The notes below the pieces were generated by a model that had not been told where the DNA came from, ran no database searches, and was given only the letters and a program-made list of their open reading frames with translations. Position numbers and translations under genes: made by a program. Of a stretch of 64,000 nucleotides of DNA, positions 6,643 through 63,740 are shown piece after piece. The number at the start of each line of letters is the position of its first letter. Position 1 is the first letter of the stretch. The stretch is from NCBI RefSeq assembly GCF_001194135.2, contig NC_068999.1, forward strand, positions 48,717,653 through 48,781,652, in the 5' to 3' direction. The stretch is from Octopus bimaculoides. Its lineage: Eukaryota.

Positions 6643-7400
6643 CATATATATATAATGTATGATATAATAGATTCATGACATGAAAAACAGGCAATAGTTA
6701 GCAACAGTAGGCATCTAGCTCTATAATAATGCATAATATATTCATGTAAGCCAATCTAAATATAGGCAAGATTAAACACTAACATTCAAATTAAACAACA
6801 AAGAAACACATAAATCTATGTACATTTGTATCGGTATTAATAGTAAACCTATATGTATGTATGTATGTATGTGTTTGTGTTGTGTAAATATACGAGGGTC
6901 CAGAGTTGTAGAAACATTCTTGAATAGTTGACTTCATATCTCTTCCTTACTCATATTTATTTTTGTAATTAAAAGGATCTTGAAAAATATTTTATTATTT
7001 ACATGCAAGCGGCTGAGGACTCCACAGGCACATATACCCTTAATGTAGTTTTCAGAGAGATTCAGCATGACAAAGAATGCGACAAGGCCAGCACTTTGAA
7101 TTACAATTCTTGTTGGGGTAGAAGAGACAACATTCTACAAATCCTTTTGATTGAGGATACAATTCTATATTTCTATGGACATAGCTTAGTAGATGAGAAT
7201 GTTGGTTAATGCAGCGCAATCATTTAGAGGTTCTGAGTTCAATCCCAGGCAAGGCACTAAGGTAATTCACAAAAAAATCAAATGAAGTAAAAAAAAATGT
7301 CATGAAATACAGAGAGTGAAATCAGAACAGCGTACTCCTGTAGATCAAATAAAGTGTTAGGTTTGAAACTCCAATTCAACATCTGAGTTCAACACCACAA

Positions 7401-7446
7401 GACATCTGAAGAAGGCTGGAGAGTATAACAGCTGAAATGTAGTGAA
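7401..7446 (+). ncRNA. Minimal type I hammerhead ribozyme motif, partly degenerate (SINE family A)
   Basis: GACAT-CTGAAGA-A-GGCTG(gagagtataa)CAGCT-GAAA-T-GTA-GTG; core intact, stem I shortened. Confidence 0.5.
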
Positions 7447-8099
7447 AATAACAATCAAGATAAGAACACCAGCCTGACTAGTATAAACATGATTTCTTCC
7501 ATTAACCCTTTAGTATTTAAACTGACCAGACCTGGCTTCTTAAATCTACTCTACAATGTCATGCTAAAAATATACAATCACATCTTAGAAATCTCAAAGT
7601 CACAAGATAATATGTGATCAATAAGTATTGCATTTGGCAGAGGAATCTGAATCCTGAAAGGTTAAAAGAGAAGAGTTTTGTTGCTCAGTTTCAAAACTAT
7701 TATAAGTCACTTGAATCTTCGCCATATGGTCTTTCAATCATCCTACACTAGATTTTATTGTGTGGGGAACCATGTTGGTGAAAATTCGCTTCAGCTGAAT
7801 TATGTGGAAACATGTCACTGAATTAGAGGAGTAAGTCCATGTCAAAAATAACTTCTTGATAGCTTTTAGCAATTAAATATTCATTCATAATTTCAATACA
7901 GCCAAAATATCTCAACACATGGCTCCTCTAGTGACTGCAGATAGTACAAGGGAGATAATCCTTTCATAATATGAGGTGGGATTAGAAATATGAAATTGAA
8001 ATTAAGGAATTATTAGAAAAAAAATGCATAGAATTTACATATTTAATTTTGTTTGTTTGGTTTTGTTTACATATGTTTATGATGTTCATAAAATTTCTA

Positions 8100-8644: not shown

Positions 8645-8948
8645 GCCATATGTCCATAGTGATTAAGAGCGCAGGCTACTAACCCCAAGATTCCAAGTTC
8701 GATTCCAAGCAGTGACCTGAATAATAATAACAATGATGATGATGATGATGATGATAACATTGTAAAATACCTTAGGAATGAGAACCCTGGTTCAAAATTT
8801 CCCCAAGACACCTGATGTAGGCTGGAGGGTATATCAGCCAAAACGTGTTAACAACAAACAAGATGAGGACAAATATCTGTCAAATGTAAATAATGTAGAT
8901 AATGTAAATAATGTACATAATTCCCCATCTCTTAAATATAGAACTGCT
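8645..8948 (+). mobile_element. tRNA-headed SINE carrying a degenerate hammerhead motif (family A)
   Basis: Near-identical to 27379-27616: B-box-like aagttcgattcc, (AAT/GAT)n linker, gacacCTGATGTaggctg...cagccAAAAcgtgtt with two core substitutions. Confidence 0.75.
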
Positions 8949-22400: not shown

Positions 22401-22464
22401 TAGTGCCTTCTCTGCAAATTACAGTCCTTGTGCCTATCATAGAAAGGACTACTACTACTACTAC

Positions 22465-22499
<35 letters not shown>

Positions 22500-23606
22500 A
22501 AATAATAATAATCAGGCATAGGACCTGAAATTAGGGGGAGAGGGTAGTTGATTACATTGACCCCAGTACTCAACTGGTACTTAATTTATCGACCGCTGAA
22601 AGGATGAAAGGCAAAGTCAACCTCAGCGGAATACTACTACTACTACTACTACTACTAATAATAATAATAATAATAATTTCTACAACAAATACTAAATGAA
22701 ATAAGATAGCAAAATGGCAGCAAGTTTGAAGTCTGCTATTCCAAGAATACACAAGAAACAACAGAATCAACTGTATCCTGCTACTCCTATTAATTTGTGG
22801 CTCCCTGTCACATTATTAAGCAGAAAGAAAATCATGCCAAACTAAATATCTTGATAGTATTTAATTTTGTACATCTACATTCTGAGTTCAAATCCTGCCA
22901 TGTCAACTTTGTATTTGGGTTCATTCAATTGGTTATACTCCTCTACAAATTTATGGCTCTAAGTCAGTAACAGGAGTAGAGAGGAAGAGATGAATAAAGT
23001 ATTAATTTATTCCATGTTTTCTACTTCAAAGGAATCCTACGAGTTATCACCTCCATCTCCAGAACGTGATATTAAACCATTTCAAAGATTTGATTCTGGT
23101 ATGTATCTGTTAATCATCCTGACACCTTTTTTTTTGCCACTTTTGAAGACGATGAATTTCAGAATATCACATTATCTTTTTGAGAATTAGTCCTAAGCAG
23201 TACTTATCCTATCAATCTCTTTTGACAAACTAAGCTACTAGGACATAAACAAACCAACACCAGTTGTCAAGTGGTTGTGGGGAAAGACACACCGTTGGAT
23301 GTCATTCATATATGTATATGACACACATCATCATCGTTGTTAATGTTCATATTCCATACTGGCATGGGTTGGATGGTTTGACAGGAGTTCACAAGCTGCT
23401 GCAGAGCTGCACCAGGCTCCAGTTGTCTGTTTTGGTGCCACATAAAAAGCCCCATGTTGATGTCACATCTAAAGCACCCATGCTGGTGCCATATATAAAG
23501 AACTGGTTCTAGTTCCTCATAAAAAGCACCCAGTACACTTTGTAAAGTGGGTTGGCATTAGGAAAGGCATCCAGCTGTAGAAACCATGCCAAGACACACT
23601 CATATA

Positions 23607-23642
<36 letters not shown>

Positions 23643-25008
23643 GTGGGCTTCAACATAGTTTCTGCCAGCCAAATTCACTCACAAGGTTATAGTAGAAGAC
23701 ACTTGTTCAAGGTACCAGGCACTGGGACTGAACCTGAAACCACCCAGTCGGAAAGCAAGCTTCTTAACCACACAGCATACCTTTAAATTTTTTTTTTTTA
23801 TATCTTGGTTGTTATTGTCAGGCTTTTGCTTTATACTCTTGCACTAGTTCCATTTATTTTCCATTCTCTGATTGATTTAATATTTAGATGTTCCATTTGT
23901 ATCTAATATCAAATTTTAATTTCTCTTATTTTCTTTTTGCACAGAAAATTCTGAATTATTTCAAAGAATTTCCCTCATAAAGCAAACTCTTTCTGAAACG
24001 AGAAACTTGAAGATGGATAAAAGATCTATTGTTGGAAATCTGTTGGAGTTGTATCGTGCTGAGCATACCATCTGTAACTATGACATCCGAGTCACATTTA
24101 ATAATGACCCCAATCTCACTTTATCGAATGATCCATCATTTCAAACCCGTCACATGTTCTGCATATTCTGGAAGAAAATTTTCAACAATAATTTTGTCGG
24201 AAATGAAGAATACTATCCAGTCATAAGTCCCGAGGCTGAAGACGATATGTTTGAAATTCTCGGCCGCATTCTCGCTCATGGATTAATATTATGTAACTAT
24301 TGGCCTATCCAGTTTGCTGTAGCATCAGCCACCTACATGCTCTGTCAAGGCTGCTCTGATGAGCTCATTTTGAAATCATTCACCAATTGCCTCAGTGGAT
24401 TTGATCAGAGGATTGTCATGTCAGCCCTAAAGGAATCTCGTTCCCAAATTGGAGAACCAACTTTCTCTTCCACTCTAGAAACCAATTTATCAGCATTTCT
24501 ATGGACTAACGGTTGTCAAATAGACCGACCTGGTCAGCTTCCTGGTATTTTGTTAAGCATAGCCAGAAGTTTTCTTATATACCAACCATACTGGGCACTT
24601 GTGAAGCTGAAGAAAGGAATGGAACACTGCAGCAATAAAGTATTCAAAGATTGTTCTGAAAGTGATGTTGAAAACTTATACAAAACATTAACACCTGAAG
24701 CATCTCAAATTTGCAAATTAATCAAGTATGAGTTTAGTCAAGAAGAATCTCACCTGGAAATTGAGAAAACATTACAGACTTACTTAGAAAAATTACTTTG
24801 GGAAATGTCATTAGTTGAACTTGCAAACTTGTTACAATTGTGGACTGGTGTGAACTGCTTGTCACAACAAACATTGTTTGTGAAATTTGTGAACACTTCA
24901 GATCAGTTACTGTTTCAGAATTATAAATCTCTGCTTCGGATCCCTCGCAAAATACAGACATTTAAAGAATTTACAGATTCCATTCAATTACTTCTGGATG
25001 GAACATGA
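19409..25008 (+). CDS. Uncharacterised ~1033-aa protein: disordered repeat N-terminus, basic patch, putative Ubl-like domain, HECT-like (probably inactive) C-terminus. Exons 19409-20930, 21252-21484, 21833-22048, 23032-23098, 23945-25008
   Basis: All junctions GT-AG with matching phases (1,0,0,1); total 3102 nt, open to TGA. HECT-like motifs: FWKKIF..FVG...YPVISP, GRILAHG...YWP, LLQLWTG. ATG exon preceded by acceptor at 19363, implying an upstream non-coding exon. Confidence 0.8.
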
Positions 25009-27123: not shown

Positions 27124-27378
27124 CACACACACGAATGCTGTACAGTGGCCAGATTATGATAGGGGATATTTGGGTGGTATAATTAAGAATTATTTTTTCC
27201 GTTTTGCTATTGTTGATTGATTCTGGGCTATATATTACCTCTGTGCAGCTGCTCAAGCTGGCTGTAATTGCAGTCAAATCTGCTAACAACCACACCTATC
27301 TTAAAGACCAACAAAAATTCTTATCGATCTGAGGTAATCACACACTCTAGACTTTAAGCAACTCAAAATGGGCCCACA

Positions 27379-27616
27379 GGCATATGGTGTAGTGGTTAAG
27401 AGCGCGGGCTACTAACCCCAAGATTCCGAGTTCGATTCCAAGCAGTGATTTGAATAATAATAATAATAACAACATCGAAAATACTTAAGGAATGAGAACT
27501 CAGGTTCAAAATTTCCTCAAGACACCTGATGAAGGCTGGAGAGTATAACAGCCGAAACGTTGTGTTAACAACAAACAAGCTGAGGACAAATATCCGTCAA
27601 ATGTAAATAATGTAAA
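27379..27616 (+). mobile_element. tRNA-headed SINE carrying an intact hammerhead motif (family A, best copy)
   Basis: A box TGGTGTAGTGG 27385-27395, B box GAGTTCGATTCC 27428-27439, (AAT)n linker, hammerhead, aatgtaaat tail. Confidence 0.85.
27521..27566 (+). ncRNA. Minimal type I hammerhead ribozyme
   Basis: Stem I GACAC/GTGTT; core CTGATGA; stem II GGCTG/CAGCC; GAAA; palindromic stem III AACGTT; GUU cleavage triplet 27559-27561. Confidence 0.75.
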
Positions 27617-28376
27617 GCAAAAACATTCAACAAAACAACACATATAAGAAGAAAAAAAATCATCCTTAATTACCTCCGAAATATTCCTTGTGACAATCAA
27701 GCTGATAGCAATATGACTTCTAAAAAAATTCCTTCATGAGACAAACGGATGGTTAACATGAATTTTACGACCGTGAAAATAAATTGTCTTAAAAATAATG
27801 AAAATAAATTGCGATGGAAACCAGAAGTGATGACACTGACTTCCCATAATTTCATGTAAACAATGTATGTATAACCAATGTTTAGAACATACATATATTT
27901 AGGTAATCTTTCTATGAGAAACATGTGAAGTGAAAATATTTCGGTAATCACTCGCTTTTAGTCTCAGAACTGTCAAACCGTAAATTTTTTTATTTCTTTA
28001 ATTATTTTTTTTCCAGCTGAATGGCTTATGTTTATATATTTTTGTGTATATATGTGTGTGTTTATGCGGAAGTATGTATGTATGTATATTTGTGTACCTA
28101 AGTATATGTATTAATATAACATGAAAACCGAACATATATCTAATATAAGATGAAAACAGTCATACTTCTGTGTTGTTCGCTGTTAGGTATAGTAAATCGG
28201 AACGGTGTAGCTCAGCTGCTATTTCTGAAATACTAGAAGGTACCATACATGTAGGTATCTGTTGACATAGTATATCACTTCCGGTTTGTATCACAATTTA
28301 CTTTCACGACCGCAAAATGTATGTTGACCCAAATTGATTATGAGCAAGTTTGACGAAGTGAAAGTAACACATTATA

Positions 28377-30513: not shown

Positions 30514-31395
30514 TTAACGGCGTTTAGTTCCACCAAATCCAGAGGCTGTTCGAGTTTCGGAGCTGCTGAAGCTACTCGTGGGACCAGAATGGTAACCTGT
30601 TGGTGACCCAAACCAATCTCTTTGATAGCCATCGCTGTAATAAGAGTTCGAGTGGTAACCACCTCTATTTCCAAAAAGGTAGCCGAGAAGTGCACCAGAA
30701 GCAAGACCACTGAAAAATCCTGGTTGCTGTCCATTATTACTGTGAGTTGAGGAGCTGTACGGGGGTGGGGCACTCTGGCCTGAGCAGTAATCGGATCTGA
30801 AACCGTATGGCGGTGGAGGACCACTTGGAGTTGGCCCGCTTTGTGCGCCTCCAGGAAAAGATGATGGATCGGTAGGTGTTGCAAAACAAGTACGATACAC
30901 GAAGAAGATAATCATAATAACAAAGAGGAAAGTGAAAATTGAGCCAAAACCCAAACCCGATTCGCGTTTCGACGAGTAATGATTGAAGTAACTGCCAGAG
31001 CTTTTCTGGTTTACGTAGTCAATGTCGTATTCCAGACCGCAAGAGCCAGCTAGGATGTAAGGGTCGTCAGCATAGTCGTAGCCTTCGCACGAAACAACAA
31101 TCTGTCCAAAGCGATACTTTTTGTCCATGTCCGTTTTACATTCCCACTGAATATCGTAGCCGTCCCAACCTCGGTTGTAACACTGGACAGTCTGTGGAAT
31201 GAAGGACCGACATCCTGCTGATCCACCAGTGCATTTTAACTGGGGAACCGGTGAAGATCTTTTCGCAGTTGTCATTTGTCCATGGTTTAAAGTGATCACA
31301 TTGACATCCTGCAACAGAACTTTTCTTCCTTCAATTTCATGGCCGTAAATCAAAAGCAGACAAATAAGTGTGGTCAGTGTCTTGATTGCCGTCAT
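30514..31395 (-). CDS. SARAF: Store-operated calcium entry-associated regulatory factor (SARAF/TMEM66), 293 aa, uninterrupted CDS
   Basis: Signal peptide; KVLLQDVNVITL..GQMTTAKRSSPVPQLKC.GGSAGC, VQCYNRGWDGYDIQWECK, VSCEGYDYADDPYILAGSCGLEY; one TM helix; Gly/Pro/Ser tail ending TASGFGGTKRR, as known for this family. Confidence 0.96.
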   Translation of the reverse strand: MTAIKTLTTLICLLLIYGHEIEGRKVLLQDVNVITLNHGQMTTAKRSSPVPQLKCTGGSAGCRSFIPQTVQCYNRGWDGYDIQWECKTDMDKKYRFGQIVVSCEGYDYADDPYILAGSCGLEYDIDYVNQKSSGSYFNHYSSKRESGLGFGSIFTFLFVIMIIFFVYRTCFATPTDPSSFPGGAQSGPTPSGPPPPYGFRSDYCSGQSAPPPYSSSTHSNNGQQPGFFSGLASGALLGYLFGNRGGYHSNSYYSDGYQRDWFGSPTGYHSGPTSSFSSSETRTASGFGGTKRR

Positions 31396-40927: not shown

Positions 40928-42397
40928 ACGGCTTCAAATAATAGATCTGCACTTAAACTAATTTCCGGTTATAAAAAAAATTAGCAAAAGAGGTTTTTCT
41001 TTCGGAAAAGCTTATTTGGAATTATTCTATCGATTTCAATTGGAAAAAAAAACTTATTATTTTATAAGTATGTAAATATAATTTTTAACTGATAAAAAAT
41101 ATCTATATTGTTTGTTCTCTTTCTTTTACCTCATTTTACGAAGAGATAGTTGCCACATCATCATTATATTCTTTAATGCATTCACTGACTTAATAAACAT
41201 TTTATTGAGGTTTTGCTTTAAAGTAATTTATTTTGTTGTTATATATCCTTAGGTACAACCCTGATAGAGTAGATCTACGATCAAAAGCATTCCAAATATG
41301 ACCACCCCCGTGTTTTTATAGGGTCTAGGACCACCCACTTTATTCAACCTGATCCTAGAAGACGATGTGCAATTTGGAGAAGATTTTGTTGCTATTTCTA
41401 GCTGGTTAAGCAACTAGGTAGAAATTAACATCGTAATTTCAATCCGTTCGGACGACAAACGTGGCCGATCAAACCAAATGAATAATAATTTTGTCGAAGT
41501 TGAAGAGTGAAAGGGCTACGCAACGTGATTAGGGCATAGAATTAACTATCGTTGGCTTTGGGTTTTTATTCGGCAGCATCGTTTAAAAAGGGTTGGAAAC
41601 ATTTTAGACTATTTTCGAAATAAATGCTACTAATTCCATACTTAATTCTAATTTTGTTTAATTTCATATCTACTTTTTAAAGTAGTATTTTTGACATTAA
41701 GGATATTTTTTTACGTAGGTACAAGATAGATTCACAGATGAATTGAACTGAAATTATGTAACGGTCAAAGCTTCCTTGGGTCGTCTAACACTGAGAATCA
41801 AACCTGTACCAATGATCATGCAGTTGCACGATCTGTTAGAAATAGCATTCAAATTTTTCTCTAATTACGCCTCACTGCATTGGACATTATAGTTTTATTT
41901 CGTAAAAAAAAAAAAGAGAAAAAAAACAGGTTGATCAGTTAGAACGCTTTTGATTACAGTTCTGCTGGATTAGGGCTGCCCTTGGGCTAAATAAACAACA
42001 CTACAACACACCGAAGTTTCCTTCTTTTTTAGAACTTTTTTGTTTTGTTTCTTATCTTGAATTTATTCTGGATGGAAAATAAGATAATCTGACAGACACA
42101 TTTTTTTTCTCAGGGTCATTAATAATATTAGTGAAGGTGAATGGCTTCAGTAGAAAAAAAACGCATTATTTATGGAATGACCCAATATGTATGTATATAT
42201 ATATATATATATATNNNNNNNNNNNNNNNNNNNNNNNNNNNNNNNNNNNNNNNNNNNNNNNNNNNNNNNNNNNNNNNNNNNNNNNNNNNNNNNNNNNNNN
42301 NNNNNNNNNNNNNNNNNNNNNNNNNNNNNNNNNNNNNNNNNNNNNNNNNNNNNNNNNNNNNNNNNNNNNNNNNNNNNNNNNNNNNNNNNNNNNNNNN

Positions 42398-42960
42398 GCA
42401 TGGCACCTTAGGTAAGTGTCTCTTCTATAGCCTTGGGCCGACCAAAGCCTTGAGAGTGGATTTGGTAGACAGAAACTGAAAGAAGCCCATCATGTATGAC
42501 GTGCATGTGTGTGTGTGTGTGTGTGTATTTTTGTGTGTCTGTGTTTGCGTCCCCCTCCCCCAACATCGCTTGACAACCAATGCTGATGTGTTTACGTCCC
42601 CGTAACTTAGTAGTTCAGCAAAAGAGACCGATAGAATAAGTACTAGGCTTACAAAGAATAAATCCTGGGGTTGATTTGCTCGACTAAAAGGTGGTGCTGC
42701 AGCATGGCCACTACCAAATGACTGAAACAAATAAAAGAATATGTCTATATGTATGTGCGTTTGTTCACCTCCCACTTGAAAACAGGTGTTGGTTTCTTTG
42801 TGTCCCCATAACTTAGCAGTTTGGAAAAAGAGACTGATAGAATAAGTACCAAACTTAAAAAATAAGTACTGGGGTTGACTTGTTTGACTAAAAATTCTGC
42901 AAGGTTGTGCTCCAGCATGACCACATTCCACTGGCTGAAACAAGAGGTAAAAGAAGAACA
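42398..42960 (+). mobile_element. Two tandem SINE copies of the abundant family
   Basis: Repeated ttggtagacagaaactgaaagaagcc...cttgacaacc...gaataagtac...cagcatg(g/a)cca...gactgaaacaa blocks. Confidence 0.75.
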
Positions 42961-43803
42961 ATTGATTGACAGCTGTCCTAAAAATTGTCATTAAAGTATA
43001 ACCTTTCACTGTAGCATGATGTTGCTGCCTCAGTATTATTGAATGCCATCTGTAGGAAACACTATCGTGGGATAAATAACTGAAATATTTGAGATGCTGA
43101 ATAAATTTTTAACATTTTGACATGGTGGAACAGTTTTATGGAAACTTCTGTCAAATACAAACTTAACAGCTGAGTGTGGGATTAAAAAAACAAAAACAAA
43201 AAGCAAAAATGTCTGGAAAGAAAAAAACAGAATATGGTGCTTAAGAGCAGTCTAGACAACTTTTTAGTGTTCTACAGTATCGTTTAAAAAGCATCTGTTA
43301 AATGGCTGTGGAAGCAAGAAAAAGATGCAAAGATAAAGAAAAAGAAAATTCTAAAAAAAAAGAAAGAAAAGAGAGAGAGAGAGAGAGAAGAGACATCAAC
43401 CACATACAGAGGTCAGCTGCTCTGCAGATGTGAAAATATTTCATAATCAGGAAAAAAAGAGAATATTTATAGACATGAACACGGGTGTGGTTAAGAAGCA
43501 CATTTTTGCAACCATGTAGTTAGTCTTGGGATCAGTTCCACCGCATGGCATCTTGCTTGAGCAAGTATCTTCTTCTATAGCTTCAGGCTGACAAAGGCTT
43601 GTACATAAATTTGGTAGACAGAAACTGTGTGAAAGCTGAAGTAGTTGTATGCTGTCAGCATAATGTGACAGTCACATGAAGGGAATAATACTACTGTTGG
43701 TTAGACCTAGGAAGCTGCACCGCTTCCTGTCGGCTCTGACACATTTCCTGTGTCCTTATGTTTACAAGGGGGAGACAAGCACCTCCACTTAGCTAAGCCT
43801 GCA

Positions 43804-43846
43804 TCCAGAGACATGTTTCTGAGTCTTTGCTTGTCACCAGTCTGGA
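43804..43846 (-). ncRNA. Hammerhead motif, degenerate copy (CUGGUGA core, one stem II mismatch)
   Basis: TCCAGA-CTGGTGA-C-AAG(caaaga)CTC-A-GAAA-CAT-GTC-TCTGGA. Confidence 0.55.
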
Positions 43847-44152
43847 GTAGCATGACCTGCTAGTCGAAGATACCTGTCAAGCTCTTGTAAACATAATAAT
43901 TCTAGTGAAATACATTCACTGATTTCAAATTTAGAAATAATACATTTCTAAATCTCTCAGAGGGATTTATGCAGTAGCGATACGTTGAAGTAGTTGTATG
44001 CTGTCAACTTAATGTGACAGTCCCATGAAGGGAATAATACTACTGTTGCTTAGACCTAGGAAGCTGCACCGCTTCTTGTCGACTTTGGCACATTTCCTGT
44101 GTCCTTATGTTTACAAGGGGGAGACAAGCACCTCCACCCAGCTAAGCCTGCA

Positions 44153-44195
44153 TCCAGAGACATGTTTCTGAGTCTTTGCTCGTCATCAGTCTGGA
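44153..44195 (-). ncRNA. Minimal type I hammerhead ribozyme with GUC cleavage site
   Basis: Stem I TCCAGA/TCTGGA; CTGATGA; stem II GAG/CTC closed by a C.A mismatch; GAAA; palindromic stem III ACATGT; GTC at 44161-44159. Confidence 0.75.
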
Positions 44196-44853
44196 ATAGC
44201 ATGACTGGTGAAAGTTGTTGCGATTCTGATTTCCAGATCAGGCAGTGTATTGCATTCCTGAGCAAAACATTTAATTTCATGTTGCTCTGTGATCACTTCA
44301 ACATCTGATGCATTGCAACACTGTACGTGTAATGTCAGTGTGATGTAAGGAGTGAGCTTTTGTACAGCACAAGCATCTTATCATTATAACCAAATCATGT
44401 ATGCAAGTTGTTCAGTAGAAAATTGCGAAGCCCTCATGTATCATTTATGACAGGAGAGGCCATCATATACAATATATATCATTGTTGTCATCATCATCAC
44501 TATCATCATGATCATCATTATCATTTAATGTCCGTTTTCATTGCTGGCATAAGTTGGATGACTTCCCAGGAACGGGAAGCTGTATTTTATTTTTATTCAG
44601 ATGTCCTGCGGTGATGGAAAGGCGGCAAAGCATACAGACCTGACAGGTTGGAAGCATGTAGTTAGCGACCTGCACATAGTCATTTCCTTGTCGCCCAAGA
44701 CAGCGATAGGATTCGGTTGCTGCATGGGTGTCTGAACAGCTCCAATAGTGGTTGATATATATATATATATATATCTATATATATATATATATATACATAC
44801 ATAAAACCATTACTAAGGGAACCTATTATCAATGTGTAAAAATGAGGTAAGAT

Positions 44854-45275
44854 GGCCTATAGTAGAAGATACTTGCCCAAGGTACCACACAGAGGAACTG
44901 AACTCGGGACCATGTGGTTGGTAAGAAGCTTGCTTCCCAACCACATGGTCCCGAGTTCAGTCCCTCTTTGTGGTACCTTGGGCAAGTATCTTCTACTATA
45001 GGCCACCCAAAACCTTGTGAATGGGTTTGGTAGACAGAAACTCAAAGAAGCCCACCAAGTGTGTGTGCGCGCGCGCACGCGTGTATGTTTGTGTCTGTCT
45101 TTGTCCCTCCCTCACCACTTGACAACTAGTGTAACTTAGTGGTTCGACAAAAGAACCAATATAATAAGTATTACGCTTAAAAATAAAGAAAATAAGTACA
45201 ATTTGTTCAATTAAAATCCTTCAAGGCAGTGCCCCAGCATGGCCGCAGTCTAATGACTGAAACAAGTAAAAGATA
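44854..45275 (+). mobile_element. SINE whose 5' part is duplicated as a 68-bp inverted repeat
   Basis: Arms 44854-44921 and 44937-45004 with 2 mismatches; normal SINE body follows. Confidence 0.85.
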
Positions 45276-45869
45276 AAATCTAAAGACAAACTTTTCTTCA
45301 GGGAATACTTACCAAAAAGAGAGTAATAGTGGCCCAAGCTATAAGTACTGCAGTATAGTCCCAGTTCAAACACTATGGAGTAGGATTGTATCCAAAGACA
45401 TTCCGACCATGACTATCTCACCTTGTTTTCAGGCACAGGGAATATAGCACAATAATCCTGCTCAAGGTGCCATGCAGCAGGATCGAACCCAGGACAATAT
45501 AGTTGGGAGCCAAACTTCTTTCCTCACAGCCACATAGGCACCTATACACACACACACACACACACACACACGATGGTGTAAAGTGGGCTACCAGCAAGTA
45601 TTGCAGGGAGAGCATATTTATTTATCATTATTTTTGGTTTTGAAATTTTGCGCCTACGGTAACTGCCCTTGTGGCCCCGCCCACATTATTCCCCAGCATA
45701 CACACATATATATGTATCATGATAAGAATGAAAAAAAATATATAGTCCTGTTGTCACAATGAACCTAAACAAGTGAACAAGTATTTCTTTTAAATGCTGA
45801 CGATTATTTTAAGAAGAAAACATAATTATTAAAACAAATAATAATGCCAGCGACAACAGCAAAAATTAT

Positions 45870-53084: not shown

Positions 53085-56000
53085 GGAGAGAGAGAGACGC
53101 ATCTGTGGGGTAGCAATTCTGCTTTCCAATCACATGGTTCCAGGTTAAGTCCCTCTGTGTGGCACCTTAGGCAAGTGTCTTCTATAGTCATGGGTCAATC
53201 AAAGCCTTGTGAGTGGCTCTTGTAGACAGAAACTGAAAGAAGCCCGCCATGTGTATATGTGTTTATATATATATATTTATGTGTATGTGTCTTTGTGCCT
53301 TTGTTTGCCCCCCCCCCATCACTTGACAACTGGTGTATTTACATCCCCATAACTTAGCAGTCGGCTAAAGAGACCAATAGAATAAGTACTAGGCTTAAAA
53401 AAGAATAAGTCCTGGGGTTGATTTCTTTGACTAAAAAACTCTTAAAGGTGGCGCTCCAGCATGGCTGCAGGTAAATGACTGAAACGAGTAAAAAAAGAAT
53501 ATGCGTGAATATTTACACATACAGTGCAGGCGTGGTGGGTGTGTAGTCAAGAAGTGCAAGCATGGCTGTGCGATTGGAAGCTTGCGTTGCAACCACGTGG
53601 TTTTGGGTTCAGTCCCACAACATAGCACTTTGAGCAAGTGCTTTCTCCTTTTTTGCTTTAGGCTTGGGCCAACCAATGCCCTGTGAGTGAATCCGATAGA
53701 TGGTAACTGTGTCGAAGCCCATTATGTGTGAGTGTGTACGTCTTTGTGTTTGCACCCCACTCCATCATTTCTTGGTAACTGGTGTTGGTTTATTTTTGTC
53801 TCTGTAACTTAGTTGTCCAGCAAAAGAGATCAGTAGGATTAGTAGCAGACTAAAAAAAAAATATATGTACTGGGACTGATTTCAACATCATTCAATGTCC
53901 GTTGTCCATGCTAGCATGGTTTGGTTGCTGTGACCATAACTGGCAAGCTGGAGGCCTGCACCAGGTTCCAGCTTGATTTGGCATGGTTTCTACAGCTGGG
54001 TGCCCTTCCTAATGCCAACCACTTTACAGAGTGTGATGGGCACTTTTATGTGGTGCCTGTTCAATTACAACCCCCAAGGCGGTAACTCTACCATGACTGC
54101 TGTCCAATGACAGAAACAAGTACAAAAAAATGGTAAAAGTTATATATTTGAAGAGCTGCAATATAGCTTCTGTCTGTTAATTCTCATCAAGTATTGTTTA
54201 GTCAGGCTGAAGATAGTTGCCCAAGATCTTGTTTGTTAGGAAGTGATTCAAAATCACATAATTGCAAAGGAAACTTAACCACAACCCACCCTGTCTTTCT
54301 TTATATGGTGTAGCTGTGTGGTGGATTGTAAAAACGTTGCTGCTATTTCCAGCAGGTTGGACAGCCATGTAGCAGTTCTTTCTTTAGCTCATGTTTTTAA
54401 ACTAAATTGCTCTAATCTTTGCCAGTCTGTTACATGAGAAGATAGAAAAACAATTACCATACTTGCATGTGGATGTGTTGCACCCTTGGTACCAAATTTT
54501 TTTCCCCTTATAGTTTTAGCTTTGCCCCGTGTATGTTGCACTTCAGTTATTTCAGATAAAATCAACAAGTAATTATGGTAATTCAATATCCATGTTTTCA
54601 TTCTTCCAACCCATTTGATATTAACCCACTTAGAATGAATGCTGTTTTTATGATACAAAGTCTTTTATTTTATCGTTCATACCGAGCCCTTTAGCATTCA
54701 GATTACCCTGTCAAGTGTAATACTTATTTATTTGACAAAAAAAAAAAGGAAAAATCTTTGGCATTTTGAATCTATGCTTTTCAATAGCAAGGAATAAGGA
54801 AAGAAAGAAAATGGAGAGAGAAAAAAAAAAACATTGTCTGGATTAATGGTGCCATGTGTCAAAATATTGTTTTATATTCAAACTGGCCCCTCACACTTAC
54901 CCTACAATATTACTCCAAAAATAAACACTCACGTCATTGGAATCTTAAAGCTACAAAGACAATGGATGATTAATTCAAACTGATCTAAATAAATAAGAAG
55001 TTTGCTTTGCAACTACATGATTTCGTGTTCAATCTCACTGTATAGCATCAAGGGTGAATGTTTTCCTATGTAGCCCTGGGCCAACTAATTCGTTCTCAGT
55101 GAACTGTACGGAAGCCAGTTGTATGTGTGTGTATGTATCTTCACATTGGCACCACTATGGCAGTTTGATGTGTGAAGGCCAGTGGAATATTTATCTTAGT
55201 TGTTTTCTGAAAAGAGTGTTTTCTCACTTGAAAACAAGCATGGTTTGGCACCTGGCCATTGAATTCTGTCTCGAACAACCTTGTCTGACATGTGCCAGCA
55301 TAGAAAAAGCGGCTGTGAAAATACTGATGATGTGATACATGAGAATTTGTTGAAAAGCCATTATCATATTATATATTATTTTCCTTTGTTTTGCAAGGAC
55401 AATATGGATATTTTCATTATTTCATTAGCACTTTTGCCATTATTGGAAAATATTGGAGTGAACGTCTTTTGAATCCTCACCAGGTCGGCTGTAACAAGGG
55501 AAGAAGGGACAGTTTTCATTTTCTCTTGGACTGCCTGAAATTATATCTTTGGTCCCAGGATATCAAACTGCTTAAAATAACTCAAATGTTCATATTTAAA
55601 TTACAATTCTTTTCTGAATTATAACTAAGCAAATGGTTTTGGTAAAGTTATGTTCAAAACATTAATGTATCGTTAAATACAAGGGTTAGTTATTTCAGCA
55701 AACCACTTCAGATTTCTGATTCATTTGTAAATAAATTTAAACACAGCAGCAGCGACAGCCTATGTTGTTTAGGGAAAACTGATCACACAAGACATTTGAC
55801 TTCTGCATTTGTTTAGTTGATTTGTACTACCTCAATCACTTTAACAGTTTGGTTTTAAGAATGGATTTATAATGGTTGAATACTGATTAACCTTCATTTA
55901 TTTTATCATTACAGATTTTGTCAGGTGATGCTGTTGTTATTCGGGGTCAACCACGTGGTGGACCTCCCAAAGAACGAACTATATGTCTGTCAAATATTAC

Positions 56001-59000
56001 AGCTCCCAGGTTAGCTCGTAGGGCTAATCCGAAAGAAACAAAAGATGAGGTAAACTGTTTTTTGATTTTCTATGTTTGTTATAGCACAGGTGTGGCTGAG
56101 TGGTTAATAAACTTGCTTCCCAACCATGTGTTCACTGTGCAACACCTTGGGCGAGTGTCTTCTATACAACCCTAGGTTCACCAAACCCATGAGTGGATTT
56201 GGTTGACAAACTGAAAAAGAGCCCGGTTTATAATTACAAACATACATATATGTATGTTTATGTATGTACCTATACCAGACTTAAAAAATATAAGTACCGT
56301 GGTTGATTTGTTTGACTACACCATTCAAGAGGGTGCCCCAGCATAGATGCCATCTATGTAAAAGTAAGTTTGTGTGTATTTTTGTCTAGACATCACATGG
56401 TGGTTTGTAAATGAGCATCAGGGTAAAGGGTATAAGATCCCTTTCAGTCATGAATGGCCATGGGATTGCATCTAGAATGTTCCCCTCTGAGGTACAAGTC
56501 TGGGCAAGGTTGTTTATGGAAGACCAGCAATCACCCATGCATATCAGCCTCTCCTCTCCATGCCACTGATGTTATCCAAGGGAAAGGCAAAAGGGGATGA
56601 TACAGCTTGGCGCCAATTACGATGCAACTCCTTTCTATAGCTGAGTGATCTAGAGCAATATGAAATAAAGTGTCTTGCTCAAGAACACAACACACAGCCT
56701 GGTCCGGCAATTGAACTATTTTATGATTGTGAATCTGACACTCCATGCATCATAGTGATACAAATGAGGTCGTTTCCGGTCTTCTGTCAAGTCTGCTAAC
56801 AACTATATAGTTCTCTTAATGTTGTGTTCCTCTAAATATTGGAAATTTGAAAATTTGTTTCTTCTGTTCAGTTAACTTTTGGTGTACCATCATGATTTTG
56901 TGTTGTTATTTCTTTAAAGCCTTATGCTTGGGAAGCCAGAGAATATCTTCGTAAGAGGTTAATAGGCCTTGAAGTGACTTTCACTGTGGAATATACTGTT
57001 CCAGGTACAAATAGAGAATATGGATGTATCTACATTGGATCTGGTGAGTGTGCAATTGTTTCTTAAGAGAAATGAAAATATTGTCATCAAATATTACACA
57101 TCATATTTTGATCTAAACATTTTTTATTATCTTGTTTTCTAAATTAGGCATGGAAGGAGGGGAAGTATATCTATGGCTTTTGCAGGTCTTTCTGCACTGG
57201 TGGGATTGATGGGGCTAATATCCAGTAAATTAATTTCTTCAGGAAAAAAAACATAGCTATTCAAAAGAAAGACTTAATCTAAAGATCAAAATTTAACAAA
57301 TTCAATGCAATTTTAATATCATTTGTATTCAAAATTTATAAGTTTTAGTAAAGGACATGAAATGGAGATGAGAATTAAATAAATGATGGATATTTATATT
57401 TTGTGTATTATTATGCTAAGCAATCACTTATCTTGATAAATTCGTTTTCTGTTGTGTTCTGAGAAAACTATTATCTGAATTACATCTCTTATGATATAGT
57501 GTAGCCAACACCATTTGTTCAAATAATCTATTAGGACTCTTCAATTATCTGGACTGAGCAGTTCAATTAATGCAGTTCCCATCTAGGTTCATTTAGCTAT
57601 TTGTATTACCACAGTCAGTGAAACAAGTACCAGATTAAAAGTGTTAAAGTAAGTTTGATGTAGGATGTCTTGACTTTGGTGGATGTTAGCTTTTAACTCA
57701 GATCCTTCTGGCAGTGTTTTTTTTTTTTTTCTTTTTTTCTCATCTTGCAGTCGCTTAACCATTAATCTCATATATCTCAATGGTTGCTCATCTTCTTGGC
57801 TAAAAAAAAAAAAAAACTGAACGGATATCTTACGATTTTGAAGCAACCAATGTAGTAAAAATGAATATTTTACAGGCTTAGTGGTGTTGGTAGATAGATC
57901 ATTAAATATTGTATGTAATTGCTAAGATTAATTTTCTTAGTATTTTTCACTAACAATATATTTGAATTGTAATTAGATTGCTAATGTCCTTGAGAAAGGT
58001 GAGAGGTATGTTCATCTCTATAATATTCATTATAGAGATGAACATTACTTGTCTCATCTCTTGTGATATTAGGAAAATGTAAAAGTTCAGTTCTACAGAT
58101 CTTCAACTGTTTCTTGATTTTCTTTTAGGTGGGAAGAATGGCTAATGCTGTTCCTACTCTGTGTCCAATATCTTAAATGCCATTGTTTCAAAAGCTATAG
58201 TGTTTGTACAAGATATGGTTTGTAAGGGAAATCAACATTGAAATTATTATTAAAAATATCATTTAATTTGATCTAGGTTGTTCAGACATAATGACGTAAC
58301 TGTAATTGACTTGATTGTATCTTAATTTGAATGTTCCAGATAATTCTCGGGAGAATATGACTGAATCATTGATATCTGAAGGTCTAGTAGAAGTAAGGCG
58401 AGGCGGTTTGAAACCATCTGAGTATGTATACTGTATTTGTTTGGCTTTTTTGTGATTATACCCAGCAAGTAAACTGCTTAAGTGTTTCAGTTAATTTTCA
58501 TTTAGAAAGGAAGACTATCCTTTCAATACCATATTGCTATTGAAACAGTTTTCGTTTCAGTTAATTTTAAAAATAACAAAGAGTTTAATAAAACAGTTTA
58601 GTCATTTTTAAGTTCGTGTTTGGAACTGAAATTAACATGAAATTTTGATTCAATTTTTAATTTAGATCATTTTGAAACAGGGCGTTTGTATAATATAATC
58701 AAGGGCTTGGTGTTAAAAGGGTTAAATTACCTCAAACTTTATATATATTGGTATAAATTACAGAAACTTTAGCTTATCTATCATTAATGTTTTGGAGATT
58801 TTAATCAAGATTTTAGTGTAGGCTGTCTCAATCAGGTTAACAAAGATTAAAAGGGTTAACAAAGTGTTATTTACTTAAAAGGTAATTTATAACTTTTGAA
58901 ATTTGAAGAGCTGATCTGACACTTGTGATGAATAAAGATGCGTTTCAGCTTGGAACCAAATGGATAGGATTTATTTATTGTAATTCAAGTAGATTATGTG

Positions 59001-62000
59001 GGTTTGTAATATGAATACATTTAATAATTCTATTTGAAATTTTCATCATTCTACTGAATTTTTAGCATTCTGGACCAAAATGTTACAAGTTCAAATTCTA
59101 CTGCTTTGCCATGCTTACTTCATCAGTGCAGCTGAAAATAGGTGCCAAGCTATTTTTCTAATGTTAACCCTTTCGTTACCGTATTTATTTTGAGATGCTC
59201 TGTGTTTCTTTCAATTAATTTTAAATATAACAAAAAATTTAGTAAAATGACTTCGTTATCATTAAGCTAGTATTAGGAACATAAATTGTGACTAAGGTGG
59301 AAGATTTTAATTCAAAACTTATGGAAACAAGTCATTTGTACTACAGAGCCAGAGCCGGTTTCAGCCGGGTTGGTATCAAAAGGGTTAAGTGGGAGAGTAG
59401 TTTCAGCTGGACTAGTCAATAGGCTGCTGACTGATGAGTCCAAAGTACATTTACTACATTGTGTCCACAGTAACTTAATTATAGAATAATCCATCTGGTT
59501 ATAAATAGGTATAGTGGATGTGCATGGCTTAGTAACGAATGGCCTCTGCTTTGTTGATTTATCCCAGATACACTCACTGCACATTGATGTAATTTTTGTT
59601 TGTTAAAAATTCAGAATTATGAAATTATAACTTAATGAATTAAATAGAGGAACACATTAGAGCTCTATCCGGTTTATAAATTGACAGCTTTTAAAATGTT
59701 TTTTTATCATTATCAAAATAGCCTAACAATAACACATACTTACAGGTGAAGGTGTGGCTGTGTAGTAAGCAGTTTACTTCCCAACCACATCGTTCTGAGT
59801 TCAGTTCCACTGTGTGGCACCTTGGGCAAGTATCTTCTACGATAGCCTTGGGCCAACCAAAGCCTTGTGAATGGATTTGGTAGGCAGAAACTGAAAGAAG
59901 TTTGTTGTGTGTGTGTGTCTGTCTGTCCCCCACCATCACTTGACAACCAGTGACTTAATGGTTCAGCAAAATACACCAATCGAATAAATACTAGGCTTAA
60001 AAAAGTAAGTCCTGGGGTCGATTCATCCGACTAAAATTCTTCAAGGTGGTGCTCCAGCATGATCATGCTCTAATGACTGAAACAAAAGCTAAAAGATACA
60101 AAATGCTGTTCAAAGATGTGTAAAAGTTGGGTTTTTCTTTCTCTTTTTCTTTCTTTTTCTTTTTTTCTCCCCTAGTAATTTTTTCCCCCCTTTTGTTTGA
60201 TGCAGTGAAAGTCAACAAAAACTGATACAATTAGAAGAAAATGCCAAGTCTGCAGGGAAAGGAAAGTGGGCCACTGGTACAGCCAATGACCACATTCGAA
60301 ACATTAAGTGGACATGTGAAAATCCACGCAATTTTGTTGAATCTCATCATTATAAACCAGTTGAAGGTAAGCTATAGGTCTCAATGTTTACATCATCATC
60401 ATCATTTAACATTTCACTGTTCCATGCTTATATGGGTCAAATGGAATTTATTGAGGCAGATTTTCTATGGCCAGATGCCCTTTTTGTTTCTAAGTGAGTT
60501 AATAGATTGCCACAGCAAGACATGGTTTTCATAGAAGACTGGAAATAAGAAATCCCACTTGTATGACCGATGGTCTTTTACAACCATCGCATGATGTCAA
60601 GACAAGGGCCCACACAAACATAAGCGCATATCTCTATGTAGCAGTGTCCATTGTTTCCAATTTTTCTGTGAATTCATCATATTTGACCATGGGGAATGGG
60701 TGAGGGTTTGGTGACAGGAAGGGCATCTGGATTTAGAAAATCTGGTTTAAATTCCATCTGATGCAAGGATGGAAAAGTAGACATTAAAGAATGGTAAATT
60801 TATGGCACACACACATGCATGCAAGCAAGCAAGAAATACATATGGCTTAATTTCTGTATTTTTAAAATCAATCTTATATTGATATTTTTGAAGATGTTTG
60901 CTTATTTTTTAATCTTTTGTTTTAAATTTCAGCTGTGATTGAGCATGTGCGTGATGGTTGCACTGTACGTGCATTTTTGTTGCCCAACTTTGATTACGTC
61001 ACAGTTATGCTGTCAGGAATCAAAGTAAGTTTGAATGTTTGTCTTTGCACATGCATACACACATATCTCTCTCTGACTATTTTTTTTTTTTTTTGCTTTA
61101 CTTGTTTCGGTCATTGGACTGCAAACTGTAGTCTAATGACCGAAACAAATGACTATTTGTTCAGTTAAGCCTTTAAAATTTAGTCAAACAAATCAATCCC
61201 AATAGGTTTTTTTAAAAAAAAATTTGGTACTTATTCCTTTGGTCTCTTTTGCAGAACTGTTAAGTAACAGGAACATAAATAAACCAACACTGGTTGTCAA
61301 ACAGTGGTGGGCAACAAACATAAACATAGNNNNNNNNNNNNNNNNNNNNNNNNNNNNNNNNNNNNNNNNNNNNNNNNNNNNNNNNNNNNNNNNNNNNNNN
61401 NNNNNNNNNNNNNNNNNNNNNNNNNNNNNNNNNNNNNNNNNNNNNNNNNNNNNNNNNNNNNNNNNNNNNNNNNNNNNNNNNNNNNNNNNNNNNNNNNNNN
61501 NNNNNNNNNNNNNNNNNNNNNNNNNNNNNNNNNNNNNNNNNNNNNNNNNNNNNNNNNNNNNNNNNNNNNNNNNNNNNNNNNNNNNNNNNNNNNNCATCTT
61601 GTGTCTGAGTCATAGTGCCCTTTTAATCTTCAGCTAGCTCTGGTTAATAGAGAAATCTAATAAATTAATATTTTTTCCCTGCAACAGTTATCGTGAATTT
61701 GAAAGTATGTTAGCACAGTCTTTTATGTATTTATTCTCTCCTTTTTTTTATTATTATTATTATTATTTATATCTAATTTTATTACTTTCATGCCATTGTT
61801 TCCCTGAAACAAAAGTATAGTTGTCGCATGTCGATATTTATAAAATTTCACTAGCCCCTACCTCACCGCACTCTATTGTGTCACTTTGTGCTGTTACAAA
61901 TTAAAATGTTGTTATACTTCTAACCACTAATAATAAGAAAAATAAAAAAACCCAGTTTAAAGTATTGATTTATGATGCCCTTTACTACTACAAACCAGGC

Positions 62001-63376
62001 ATGAGCAGCATATATTATCAGTCAAACAAACTAAAGTATATATGGCCTTTATATACATCTTGTTCAGTGGCATAATACAATGGGTGTAGTTGTAGCAAGG
62101 TTTCAAATCTGCATATGGTCACTAGTCAAATACTTCAGCATCTTAAATTTATGTATATAGTATTAGCAACAGAAGCAATATTAATAACAAAAGGTAATCT
62201 TTATATCCAACTTAACATGATGCCTTGGTAGAACACCAAATACTGTGTTATTAGCTTTGAGAAATTCTCTCCTATAGGCACTTGGTGCATAAGAGCCCAC
62301 ACAGACTGTGCAAGCAAAAATGAAAAAATCGGAATTAAAACACATGGAAATATGTTCTCTTGCAGACATGCCCAGCTCCTGCCAGTGAATGAAAATAAGT
62401 GTAAAATATAACAATGATACAAAAACATAAATCCATTTGTTGTAAAATAAAAACTTTTTTTTGTTTTTTCTTCAAGGCACCAATGTTCAAAATGGAAGGT
62501 GTTCAACAAGTAGCAGAAGAATTTGCAGAAGAAGCCAAATATTTCACTGAATCACGGTTGCTGCAAAGAGATGTGAAAATCATTCTGGAAGGAACCTCCA
62601 ACCAAAACTTCCTTGGAACAGTCATACATCCGGTAAGGTTTACTTTTCCACTTCATATTTATTCTTCCTCATTCTTATATGAAGCAGGGCAGAGGTAGCT
62701 TAAGCTCTTATGCAGTTTTCTAATTTCCAGCTGGTCTTTTTCAATAAAAGTTCTGTTATAAAGTGATTGGCATTCAGAAGAGCAACCAGCCGTAGAATCC
62801 AAGCCATGCCAAACAAACACAGGTGCATGCTGTGTTTCTTGGGCCCATCGGATCCTGTCAAACCGTCCAACTATGCCAGCATTTGAACACACGTTAAATG
62901 ATGCTGCTCAATACTGTGGTTGTTTCATGGATGTAGGTCAGTGTGTGAAAGCTTTTTCAATAAAGCTGTATTATTGATTTCTGAAGACACAGATGGCTTT
63001 CATCTCCCATTATCATCATATTTTCATGATTTAGTATTATAGAATTTTTAATACGGTTCAGTTCCTATCAATGAAACATCATCTAATTAGTCATTTAACC
63101 CATTTCCATTCAGCCCTATCAGTAGCATGTTTGAAAATTTAACTCTTTTGGCATTTAAACTGGCCATATCCAGCTCAAACATCCTACTTGTTTGATGTTC
63201 AAAATAGACATTTCTGAAATGCAAATGATTCTAATAATTTTAAATGAAATTTTTGTTTCCTACTTACAGAGAGGCAACATTACAGAATTTTTATTAAGTG
63301 AAGGTTTTGCACGATGTGTTGACTGGAGCATGGGAGTTGTTACAAGTGGGACTGAAAAGTACCGTGCAGCTGAAAG
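46631..63376 (+). CDS. SND1: Staphylococcal nuclease domain-containing protein 1 (Tudor-SN), 5' part. Exons 46631-46675, 55915-56049, 56920-57043, 58340-58421, 60206-60366, 60933-61024, 62477-62632, 63270-63376; continues past window
   Basis: All GT-AG, phases consistent (0,0,1,2,1,0,0,2). Translation [43 protein letters not shown]..., [81 protein letters not shown] matches SN1/SN2 of SND1. Confidence 0.97.
47500..48650. repeat. Compound (TA)n/(TG)n/(TATG)n microsatellite with large assembly gap
   Basis: Directly visible; similar tracts at ~3110-3400, 10400-10650, 12420-12980, 16220-16450, 26640-26800. Confidence 0.95.
59164..59388. mobile_element. piggyBac-like MITE in SND1 intron 4
   Basis: TTAA|CCCTTTCGTTACC ... 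GGTATCAAAAGGG|TTAA. Confidence 0.75.
59742..60090 (+). mobile_element. SINE (abundant family) in SND1 intron 4
   Basis: ggtgtggctgtgtagtaag...gactgaaacaaaag. Confidence 0.85.
61090..61325 (-). mobile_element. SINE 3' part (abundant family), antisense, in SND1 intron 6
   Basis: Reverse complement of ttgacaaccagtg...gcaaaagagacc...gaataagtacc...gactaaa block. Confidence 0.7.
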
Positions 63377-63740
63377 GTAATTAGAGTGATTTAATGTTTT
63401 TTTCAATTACTTTTATCAGCATCTAACCCTTTTATCTTTCTGTATCCCTCTCTCTACTCATTCTCCTAGCCTAACTTTGTCTCCTGCATTCTTGCCCCCG
63501 AGGTCCATAGTTTTGCAAGCTGCATAGTGATCTCACTAGTGTGGTGGCACATGAAAAAAGCACCCAGGCGACACCATAGTGGCTGGTGTTATGAAGGGCA
63601 TCCAGCTGTAGAAACCGTGTCAAAGGTGAGGCAGAAGCATGATACAGTCCTTGAACCCACTGGGTCCTGTGAAACCATCCAACCAATTACAGCATGGAAC
63701 ATGGGACATTAAATGATGTTGATGGAATTGATATAATAAG

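Follow-up and report, generated by a model that had tools for sequence, protein, structure and literature searches.

A partly decayed, retrozyme-like hammerhead repeat upstream of TMEM216 in Octopus bimaculoides

The 64-kb stretch of Octopus bimaculoides DNA analysed here (64,000 nucleotides of contig NC_068999.1, assembly GCF_001194135.2, with assembly gaps; hereafter the window) contains a tandem repeat carrying two hammerhead ribozyme motifs on its minus strand. The element is probably a lineage-specific insertion, now partly decayed, in which a 349-nt non-coding sequence of the metazoan retrozyme type without long terminal repeats (non-LTR) is present as about 1.6 head-to-tail units. We favor this reading because its size, GC content, lack of an open reading frame (ORF), rod-like fold and ribozyme layout match those of published metazoan non-LTR retrozymes. 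The element has the features that structurally define this class: a type I hammerhead, a unit in the range of ~150-450 nt, a low GC content, a self-paired monomer, and no ORF, long terminal repeat (LTR), primer-binding site (PBS) or polypurine tract (PPT). The first-pass annotation of this DNA had called the locus retrozyme-like, as a non-coding 349-nt unit with dimer-type type I hammerheads, and this core identification holds.

Tandem organization of the element

Repeat finding and blastn agreed on two 220-nt direct repeats that are 94.1% identical and whose starts lie 349 nt apart; the 13 differences between them comprise 10 transitions and 3 transversions. The first-pass annotation had reported two ~90-95% identical 220-bp repeats at a distance of 349 bp, and its coordinates and its description of both the repeats and the motif proved correct. 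Tandem Repeats Finder (TRF) did not report a 349-nt period and called no tandem array at the locus, because only ~1.6 units are present. Read on the minus strand, the insert extends from 46 nt before cleavage site A to 173 nt past cleavage site B. Retrozymes are described as at least two head-to-tail units of ~150-450 nt, each with a type I hammerhead; here, a 349-nt period with two hammerhead positions extends over 1.63 units, and one of the two cores is mutated. The parts of the element and of its hammerheads are as follows (all on the minus strand).

43636..44207, whole inserted element, ~1.63 units of the 349-nt repeat (ends uncertain by 2-3 nt)
43986..44205, repeat copy A, with the intact hammerhead core; upstream on the minus strand
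43637..43856, repeat copy B, with the mutated hammerhead; downstream on the minus strand
43857..43985, single-copy part of the unit, 129 nt, AU-rich, with internal hairpins and part of the rod pairing with the repeat
43810..44158, predicted 349-nt monomer from cleavage site to cleavage site (from folding)
44153..44195, hammerhead A (from the sequence and a descriptor parse)
44195-44190 and 44158-44153, 5' and 3' strands of helix I of hammerhead A, 6 bp
44189-44183 and 44168-44165, core strands CUGAUGA and GAAA of hammerhead A; 44182 and 44169, the unpaired C and A that flank its helix II
44181-44179, 44178-44173 and 44172-44170, helix II of hammerhead A: GAG, loop 2 (CAAAGA) and CUC, respectively
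44165-44160, helix III palindrome ACAUGU of hammerhead A, followed by C17 at 44159, with predicted cleavage 3' of C17
43804..43846, hammerhead B, motif as in A except for A6G (43837; CUGGUGA) and a G to A change at the first helix II pair (43832); C17 at 43810
44208..44214, candidate target-site duplication, upstream copy, CTTTCAC
43629..43635, candidate target-site duplication, downstream copy, CTTTCAC

A type I hammerhead with an intact core in one copy

Hammerhead A reads UCCAGA-CUGAUGA-C-GAG-CAAAGA-CUC-A-GAAA-CAUG-U-C17/UCUGGA (a slash marks the predicted cleavage site here and below), and GUC triplets are found at 44161-44159 in A and at 43812-43810 in B. All conserved positions of a type I core are present in copy A (C3-U4-G5-A6-N7-G8-A9, G12-A13-A14, an A15.1-U16.1 pair and an H17 that is not G), while the core of copy B is broken by A6G. 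The three helices of a type I hammerhead can be assigned: helix I is open-ended and runs on into a rod, helix II has 3 bp and a 6-nt loop, and helix III is intermolecular only. Helix II consists of three Watson-Crick pairs and no more, with the flanking C (44182) and A (44169) unpaired. As a hairpin, helix III would have 2 bp closing a 2-nt loop and would be unable to form; the 6-bp intermolecular ACAUGU duplex is its only real form, and the ribozyme must therefore act as a double hammerhead, that is, as a dimer. These observations confirm the type I hammerhead of the first-pass annotation, with its 6-bp stem I, GUC sites and palindromic ACAUGU stem III, as well as its distinction between an intact core in the 44153 copy and A6G plus a stem II change in the 43804 copy.

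The rarity of the motif was assessed with a relaxed descriptor (CUGANGA; helix II of at least 3 bp, flanked on either side by no more than one unpaired base; GAAA; as helix III, a palindrome with U16.1 at its end; H17; helix I of at least 5 bp). It returned 0.0033 matches per 64 kb of first-order Markov sequence (both strands, 300 simulations), a figure that is approximate and indicative only because the descriptor was written after the motif had been seen. The coral, mussel and two axolotl retrozyme hammerheads that served as positive controls were recovered (constructs from the supplement of Cervera & de la Pena 2020, PMC7229834), and in the octopus element hammerhead A passes and hammerhead B fails. 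A chance motif as the main explanation was rejected on this background together with independent features, namely the rod fold, the flanking duplication and the break in homology at the end of the element.

The published canonical metazoan type I hammerhead has a helix I of 6 bp, a helix II of ~4 positions and a helix III of 1-2 bp with a 2-4-nt palindromic loop. The octopus hammerhead fits this layout with its 6-bp helix I, short helix II and palindromic loop 3. Measured against the minimal hammerheads (min-HHRs) of Penelope-like elements (PLEs), hammerhead A has a different architecture, in that 6 bp make up helix I and 3 bp helix II, and loop 3 is a palindrome of 2 nt. Judged by its layout, the octopus ribozyme is thus of the canonical retrozyme type rather than of the PLE min-HHR type.

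The 349-nt unit is predicted to fold into a rod

The minimum free energy of the 349-nt monomer was -115.9 kcal/mol, compared to -84.7 +/- 5 kcal/mol for dinucleotide shuffles. Published retrozyme circular RNAs (circRNAs) are “small and highly self-paired”, and the octopus monomer is predicted to be highly self-paired as well because its folding z scores are far below zero (-6.4 or -6.15 as a linear and -4.8 as a circular molecule). Its GC content of 41.5% (34.5% for the window) lies below the 45-50% that bounds retrozymes. In the predicted fold, cleavage yields a 5' end (UCUGGAUGCAGGCUUAGCUGG...) whose pairing partner is the stretch immediately upstream of the next hammerhead core, and helix I lies at the end of a long quasi-rod by which the entire monomer is closed. 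Directly after the 6-bp helix I, a small internal loop (3 nt opposite 1 nt) is followed by a further helix. The predicted circular junction of the monomer at the GUC site reads ...ACAUGUC/UCUGGAUGC....

The element appears to be a lineage-specific insertion

The comparison with other species drew on TMEM216 with its 10-kb flanks in O. sinensis (locus L002) and O. vulgaris (locus L003), 61 kb in total. The regions upstream of TMEM216 in these species align to the window at 84-91% identity. Window positions 43218-43638 align with L002 1094-1520 and L003 184-600, and this homology (84-86%) starts exactly at the 3' end of the element. The element itself has no match in either species and is thus missing from the orthologous site. 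At 5.9%, the difference between the two repeat copies is smaller than that seen in the flanks when the species are compared (9-16%), which suggests that the insertion took place after the species split if the copies were identical at integration. The 7-nt sequence CTTTCAC that flanks the element on both sides is found in a single copy at the orthologous site of O. vulgaris, where O. sinensis has CTTTCCC; the chance of a 7-nt match within 3 nt of both element ends is ~0.002. Retrozymes are described as dispersed multicopy families whose target-site duplications, when present, exceed 4 bp, and the octopus element has this 7-nt candidate duplication and no second copy within the window. Finally, the insert is longer than one unit and its phase is arbitrary relative to the cleavage sites, which would point to a circle or an uncleaved multimer, and not a linear, fully processed monomer, as the template for reverse transcription. 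Overall, a lineage-specific insertion in O. bimaculoides relative to O. sinensis and O. vulgaris is the best reading of these alignments.

In both O. sinensis and O. vulgaris, an octopus short interspersed element (SINE; L002 1089-1094, L003 ~180-184) has its 3' end at the base immediately upstream of the junction. The same nucleotide (window 43636-43638) is thus abutted by the hammerhead element in O. bimaculoides and by a SINE 3' end in the other two species, and either a hotspot or a rearrangement would account for the shared junction nucleotide. Between the element's left flank and the octopus SINE, no similarity above shuffled controls was seen. To its right, the element is flanked by a 5'-truncated member of another repeat family, whose full copies carry a TA/CA microsatellite just upstream of the junction point, and the site may therefore be a shared hotspot for insertion or instability. 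This ~360-nt family (tail AGTTTCYGTCTACCAAATCC..., preceded by the TA/CA microsatellite) has full or partial copies at 42398-42960, 43528-43636 and 44853-45278 of the window and at L002 1536-3457. It includes a 73-nt inverted repeat with 96% complementarity (44853-44925 / 44933-45005), and in O. sinensis extra copies lie between the orthologues of window positions 43218 and 43215.

The element has no coding capacity

The longest ORF touching the element has 74 aa, and a 419-aa concatenation of all its stop-free frames had no homologue among 5.8 billion proteins, in agreement with the first-pass annotation, which had seen no ORF. The element has neither coding capacity nor an LTR, PBS or PPT, as expected of a retrozyme. 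No Pfam domain, and hence neither a reverse transcriptase (RT) nor a GIY-YIG domain, was found in any frame of 41-49 kb of the window. A PLE-like RT/endonuclease (EN) query, which makes for a weak test, had no tblastn match in the window and three loci (145 kb of octopus sequence). PLE pseudo-LTRs (pLTRs) are direct repeats that flank or adjoin an ORF with RT and GIY-YIG domains; here only 129 nt separate the repeats, and the 41-49 kb region is free of such domains. Two pattern scans of a metagenome collection (helix I plus core plus variable helix II plus helix III, and then a 23-mer) found nothing, in a collection that probably holds no octopus DNA.

Weighing the retrozyme reading against its alternatives

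Several observations weigh against a retrozyme. With regard to the ribozyme, the G10.1-C11.1 pair directly adjoining A9 and G12 is absent, being offset or replaced by the unpaired C and A. Rfam gave no hammerhead match in the whole window at the gathering score or in 43.4-44.5 kb at E<=10, a result that is uninformative for hammerheads with a short helix III. Core B, to judge from its A6G change, is dead. The pipeline of a 2026 survey of vertebrates required two or more successive units whose hammerheads are complete, and the octopus locus would fall short of this rule of two complete hammerhead ribozymes (HHRs) for an active retrozyme. With regard to mobility, blastn found no third copy of the 220-nt repeat within the window, and no other copy was seen in the 61 kb from O. 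sinensis and O. vulgaris. The left flank (44206-44750) had no match in the 1.1 kb (O. sinensis) and 0.18 kb (O. vulgaris) available upstream. No clean empty site was recovered in these two species, and for this reason, and because a SINE abuts the same nucleotide there, the target-site duplication stays a candidate. No candidate for an autonomous partner of the retrozyme-type element was identified, and a survey of PLEs describes the Naiad PLEs of cephalopods as ancient remnants without canonical hammerheads. Only a single locus was seen, and that the element belongs to a family and is mobile is what we infer from it.

The first-pass annotation had named a PLE pLTR as its main alternative, and we keep it as a rival while considering it unlikely. 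The element would then be the remnant of an autonomous PLE, either tandem 3' ends (a pLTR) or an internally deleted copy, and the hammerhead would be the terminal ribozyme of that PLE. PLE insertions do take the form of partial tandems, and PLE pLTRs contain type I hammerheads (PMC4209133); the C left unpaired after A9 could correspond to the extra base that is typical of PLEs between positions 9 and 10.1, and a family with PLE-type min-HHRs is present elsewhere in the window (see below). The categories also overlap: according to a 2026 preprint, vertebrate retrozyme families are sister to PLE pLTRs, and animal retrozymes are argued to derive from PLE pLTRs, so that the choice between a retrozyme and a PLE remnant is partly a matter of definition. 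At this locus, however, the absence of the element from the orthologous sites, the 7-nt duplication, the canonical ribozyme and the lack of RT or GIY-YIG signals in 41-49 kb argue against a pLTR. Only 129 nt separate the repeats, the PLE-like query found nothing (weak as this test is), and the layout differs from the longer helix II, shorter helix I and missing loop 3 of a min-HHR. In addition, a closed 349-nt unit that folds as a rod is unexpected for PLE termini.

A repeat of the kind of Schistosoma Sm-alpha or newt satellite 2, that is, a SINE- or satellite-like hammerhead sequence transcribed by RNA polymerase III (pol III) and spread by the machinery of long interspersed elements (LINEs) or by unequal exchange without any circRNA, is very improbable in our view. 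In its favor is a perfect A-box match, TAGCTAAGTGG (consensus TRGCNNAGTGG), at 43785-43795 on the minus strand, ~15 nt after cleavage site B, which was found after the fact and may be due to chance; the corresponding position in copy A (44134-44144, minus strand) has one mismatch. The ribozyme strand of the element also has no run of four or more T, and metazoan retrozymes have been viewed in the literature as a kind of SINE. Against this, the element has no B box, the unit has no tRNA-like structure according to ARAGORN, no poly(A) or simple-repeat tail is found at the 3' end, and an insert longer than one unit in arbitrary phase is not typical of SINE insertions. Even smaller is the chance that ordinary intergenic DNA with a hammerhead-like string was duplicated locally, with neither ribozyme nor mobility involved. 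Two copies at a single locus, the silence of Rfam, a non-canonical base of helix II and a repeat-rich, rearrangement-prone region would all suit such a duplication. It would leave unexplained the descriptor background of 0.003 per 64 kb, the fit of features that no descriptor required (a CAAANA loop 2, an internal loop after a 6-bp helix I, rod closure at z ~ -6), the homology that breaks exactly at the element end in two species and the 7-nt flanking duplication.

Proposed origin and fate of this copy

Under the retrozyme reading, the insertion would have arisen along the lines of the published retrozyme model. Tandem copies of the family would be transcribed, and neighbouring hammerheads would pair through ACAUGU into a 6-bp helix III to form a double hammerhead in which each core cuts after the GUC of the other. 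The resulting 349-nt monomer, with a 5'-OH and a 2',3'-cyclic phosphate, would be circularized by a host tRNA ligase of the RtcB type to give a rod-like circRNA. An RT acting in trans, most likely that of a PLE, would then use target-primed reverse transcription to copy the circle, or a multimer, beyond a single lap, which would leave an insert of more than unit length, in arbitrary phase, with a short flanking target duplication.

The present copy is best seen as a fossil and not as a working circRNA gene, as far as can be judged from its DNA. Because of the strand topology of a double hammerhead, core B would cut site A and core A would cut site B. At this locus, the rod is compatible with the active site that core B, the one with A6G, forms with site A. 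The other combination, of core A and site B, would have the short helix I only, because the extension of helix I lies outside the insert. With core B dead, at most one cut would be expected (site B by core A), and release of a monomer would be unlikely. The first-pass annotation had expected transcription through the locus to release a 349-nt monomer or circRNA; with a helix III that works only in the dimer and A6G in core B, this part of its account is unlikely.

Genomic setting

The element lies within a ~15-kb intergenic region between the divergent genes TMEM216 and SND1, as previously annotated, 2.7 kb upstream of TMEM216 and on the same strand as this gene. TMEM216 (Pfam Transmemb_17, XP_014782685.1) occupies ~35.5-40.9 kb on the minus strand, and SND1 exons start at ~55.9 kb on the plus strand (55915-63377). 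A run of N at ~42157-42398 marks an assembly gap that corresponds to ~5.3 kb in O. sinensis (L002 3428-8733), and the true distance between the element and TMEM216 may therefore exceed that in the window. A protein search with the translated SND1 exons returned a snail protein at 71% identity and an unnamed one, and no octopus SND1; the octopus protein seems to be missing or unindexed in that collection. Elsewhere in the window, SARAF is a single uninterrupted ORF of 293 aa (30514-31395, minus strand); its exact match on chromosome CM046619.1 (assembly GCA_001194135.2) puts the window at ~48.72-48.78 Mb of this record. The gene next to it (19409-25008, plus strand, 1033 aa, no Pfam match on record) includes a 517-aa low-complexity, Asn/Ser-rich ORF with NRD(S/T)F-like repeats and a 333-aa terminal ORF.

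A second hammerhead motif in the window

A motif of the PLE min-HHR type was found at 27520-27567 on the plus strand, within a repeat at 27370-27620, and reads AGACAC-CUGAUGA-A-GGCUG-GAGAGUAUAA-CAGCC-GAAA-CG-U-U/GUGUUA. An A bulges out after A9, helix II has 5 bp and a G10.1-C11.1 pair, the palindrome ACGU comes without a loop 3, and helix I has 5 bp. A tRNA-like head (GGTGTAGTGGTTAAGAGCGCGGGCTACTAACCCCAAGATTCCGAGTTCGATTCC) and an (AAT)n run are found ~80 nt upstream of the motif. The 27370-27620 repeat looks like a tRNA-derived SINE that carries a PLE-type ribozyme, and related copies with decayed cores are found at 8657-8897 and 7395-7468. Neither ARAGORN nor Rfam recognized its head or ribozyme (no hammerhead or tRNA match in 27.3-27.7 kb at E<=10). 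The min-HHR at 27520-27567 hints at a hammerhead-bearing PLE partner in octopus.

Implications

Retrozymes are a known and widespread class of animal mobile elements, and one more host lineage leaves this picture unchanged. In practical terms, the locus is a repeat in decay that lies 2.7 kb upstream of TMEM216 and shows no sign of being functional today, and its presence or absence among Octopus species would mean that such elements were mobile after the lineages split. A live, previously unreported cephalopod retrozyme family, which would produce rod-like circRNAs of ~349 nt by a dimer-only hammerhead in the style of amphibians and of which the present element would be one fossil, is possible, if doubtful. 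If it exists, it would be an abundant source of circRNAs that are not back-spliced in a group with unusual RNA biology. It would also provide an invertebrate example of a dimer-dependent ribozyme, contradicting the generalization that retrozyme ribozymes of invertebrates cleave efficiently as monomers (PMC7229834). Together with the SINE-borne min-HHR, such a live family would further imply an active hammerhead-bearing PLE partner where only ancient Naiad remnants have been described.

Comparison with known hammerhead elements

A full-text search of the literature found nothing on hammerheads or retrozymes in octopus beyond the cephalopod Naiad PLEs of the PLE survey. The element shares with Schistosoma Sm-alpha/Sm1 and newt satellite 2 a 6-bp helix I followed by an internal loop, a 6-nt CAAANA loop 2 (CAAAUA in the Sm1-derived N79 ribozyme, CAAAGA in octopus) and short non-coding repeats. 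However, helix II of Sm1 is regular (GUCC/GGAC) and its internal loop 1, of the 4x4 kind, makes a known tertiary contact, whereas loop 1 of the octopus motif has 3 nt opposite 1 nt. A loop 1/loop 2 contact of the Schistosoma type was dropped for this reason (4x4 in N79/Sm1, 3x1 in octopus). With the PLE min-HHRs (Cervera & de la Pena 2014, PMC4209133), the octopus hammerhead has in common the type I topology, palindromic positions 15.2-16.2, an expected dimeric action and possibly an extra base after A9. PLE min-HHRs differ by a helix II of 6-8 bp with a G10.1-C11.1 pair that is described as highly conserved (PMC4209133), a helix I of 4-5 bp, the usual lack of loop 3 and a flanking RT/GIY-YIG ORF, none of which is found in the octopus element.

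The retrozymes of Mytilus galloprovincialis (350-390-nt repeats, ~5000 hammerheads; PMC7229834) come from the same phylum, Mollusca, and have a unit of nearly equal size. Both ribozymes are of type I, with 6 bp in helix I and, as helix III, a palindrome that lacks a true loop (ACGCGCGU in mussel, ACAUGU in octopus), and the loops of both are without most of the canonical bases for tertiary contacts. Unlike in octopus, helix II of the mussel ribozyme is a regular 4-bp stem with G10.1-C11.1, and its helix III palindrome is 8 nt long and GC-rich. The mussel ribozyme cleaves as a monomer at ~0.1 per min, and there is no similarity between the mussel and octopus unit sequences.

A close parallel is found in the axolotl retrozymes Rtz330 and Rtz353 (HHR_Amex1 and HHR_Amex2; PMC7229834). 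Their units of 330-353 nt, compared to 349 nt in octopus, are likewise tandem, non-coding and rod-like. The 3' half of the octopus hammerhead, GAAACAUGUC, is identical to that of Rtz330, loop 2 is CAAAGA in octopus and CAAAAA in axolotl (PMC7229834), and there is no sequence similarity outside the ribozyme. Rtz353 (CUGAUGA-U-GCC-CACUA-GGC-U-GAAAC) has the same 3-bp helix II between two unpaired bases, which are U and U there, and its ribozyme self-cleaves weakly alone and much better as a dimer (PMC7229834). In both animals helix III is too weak for activity as a monomer, which in octopus is a predicted dependence on the dimer. The axolotl has ~10^5 copies and demonstrated circRNAs, whereas the octopus element is one decayed copy of 1.6 units. 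The octopus motif looks more like this amphibian dimer type than like the efficient monomeric type reported for invertebrates.

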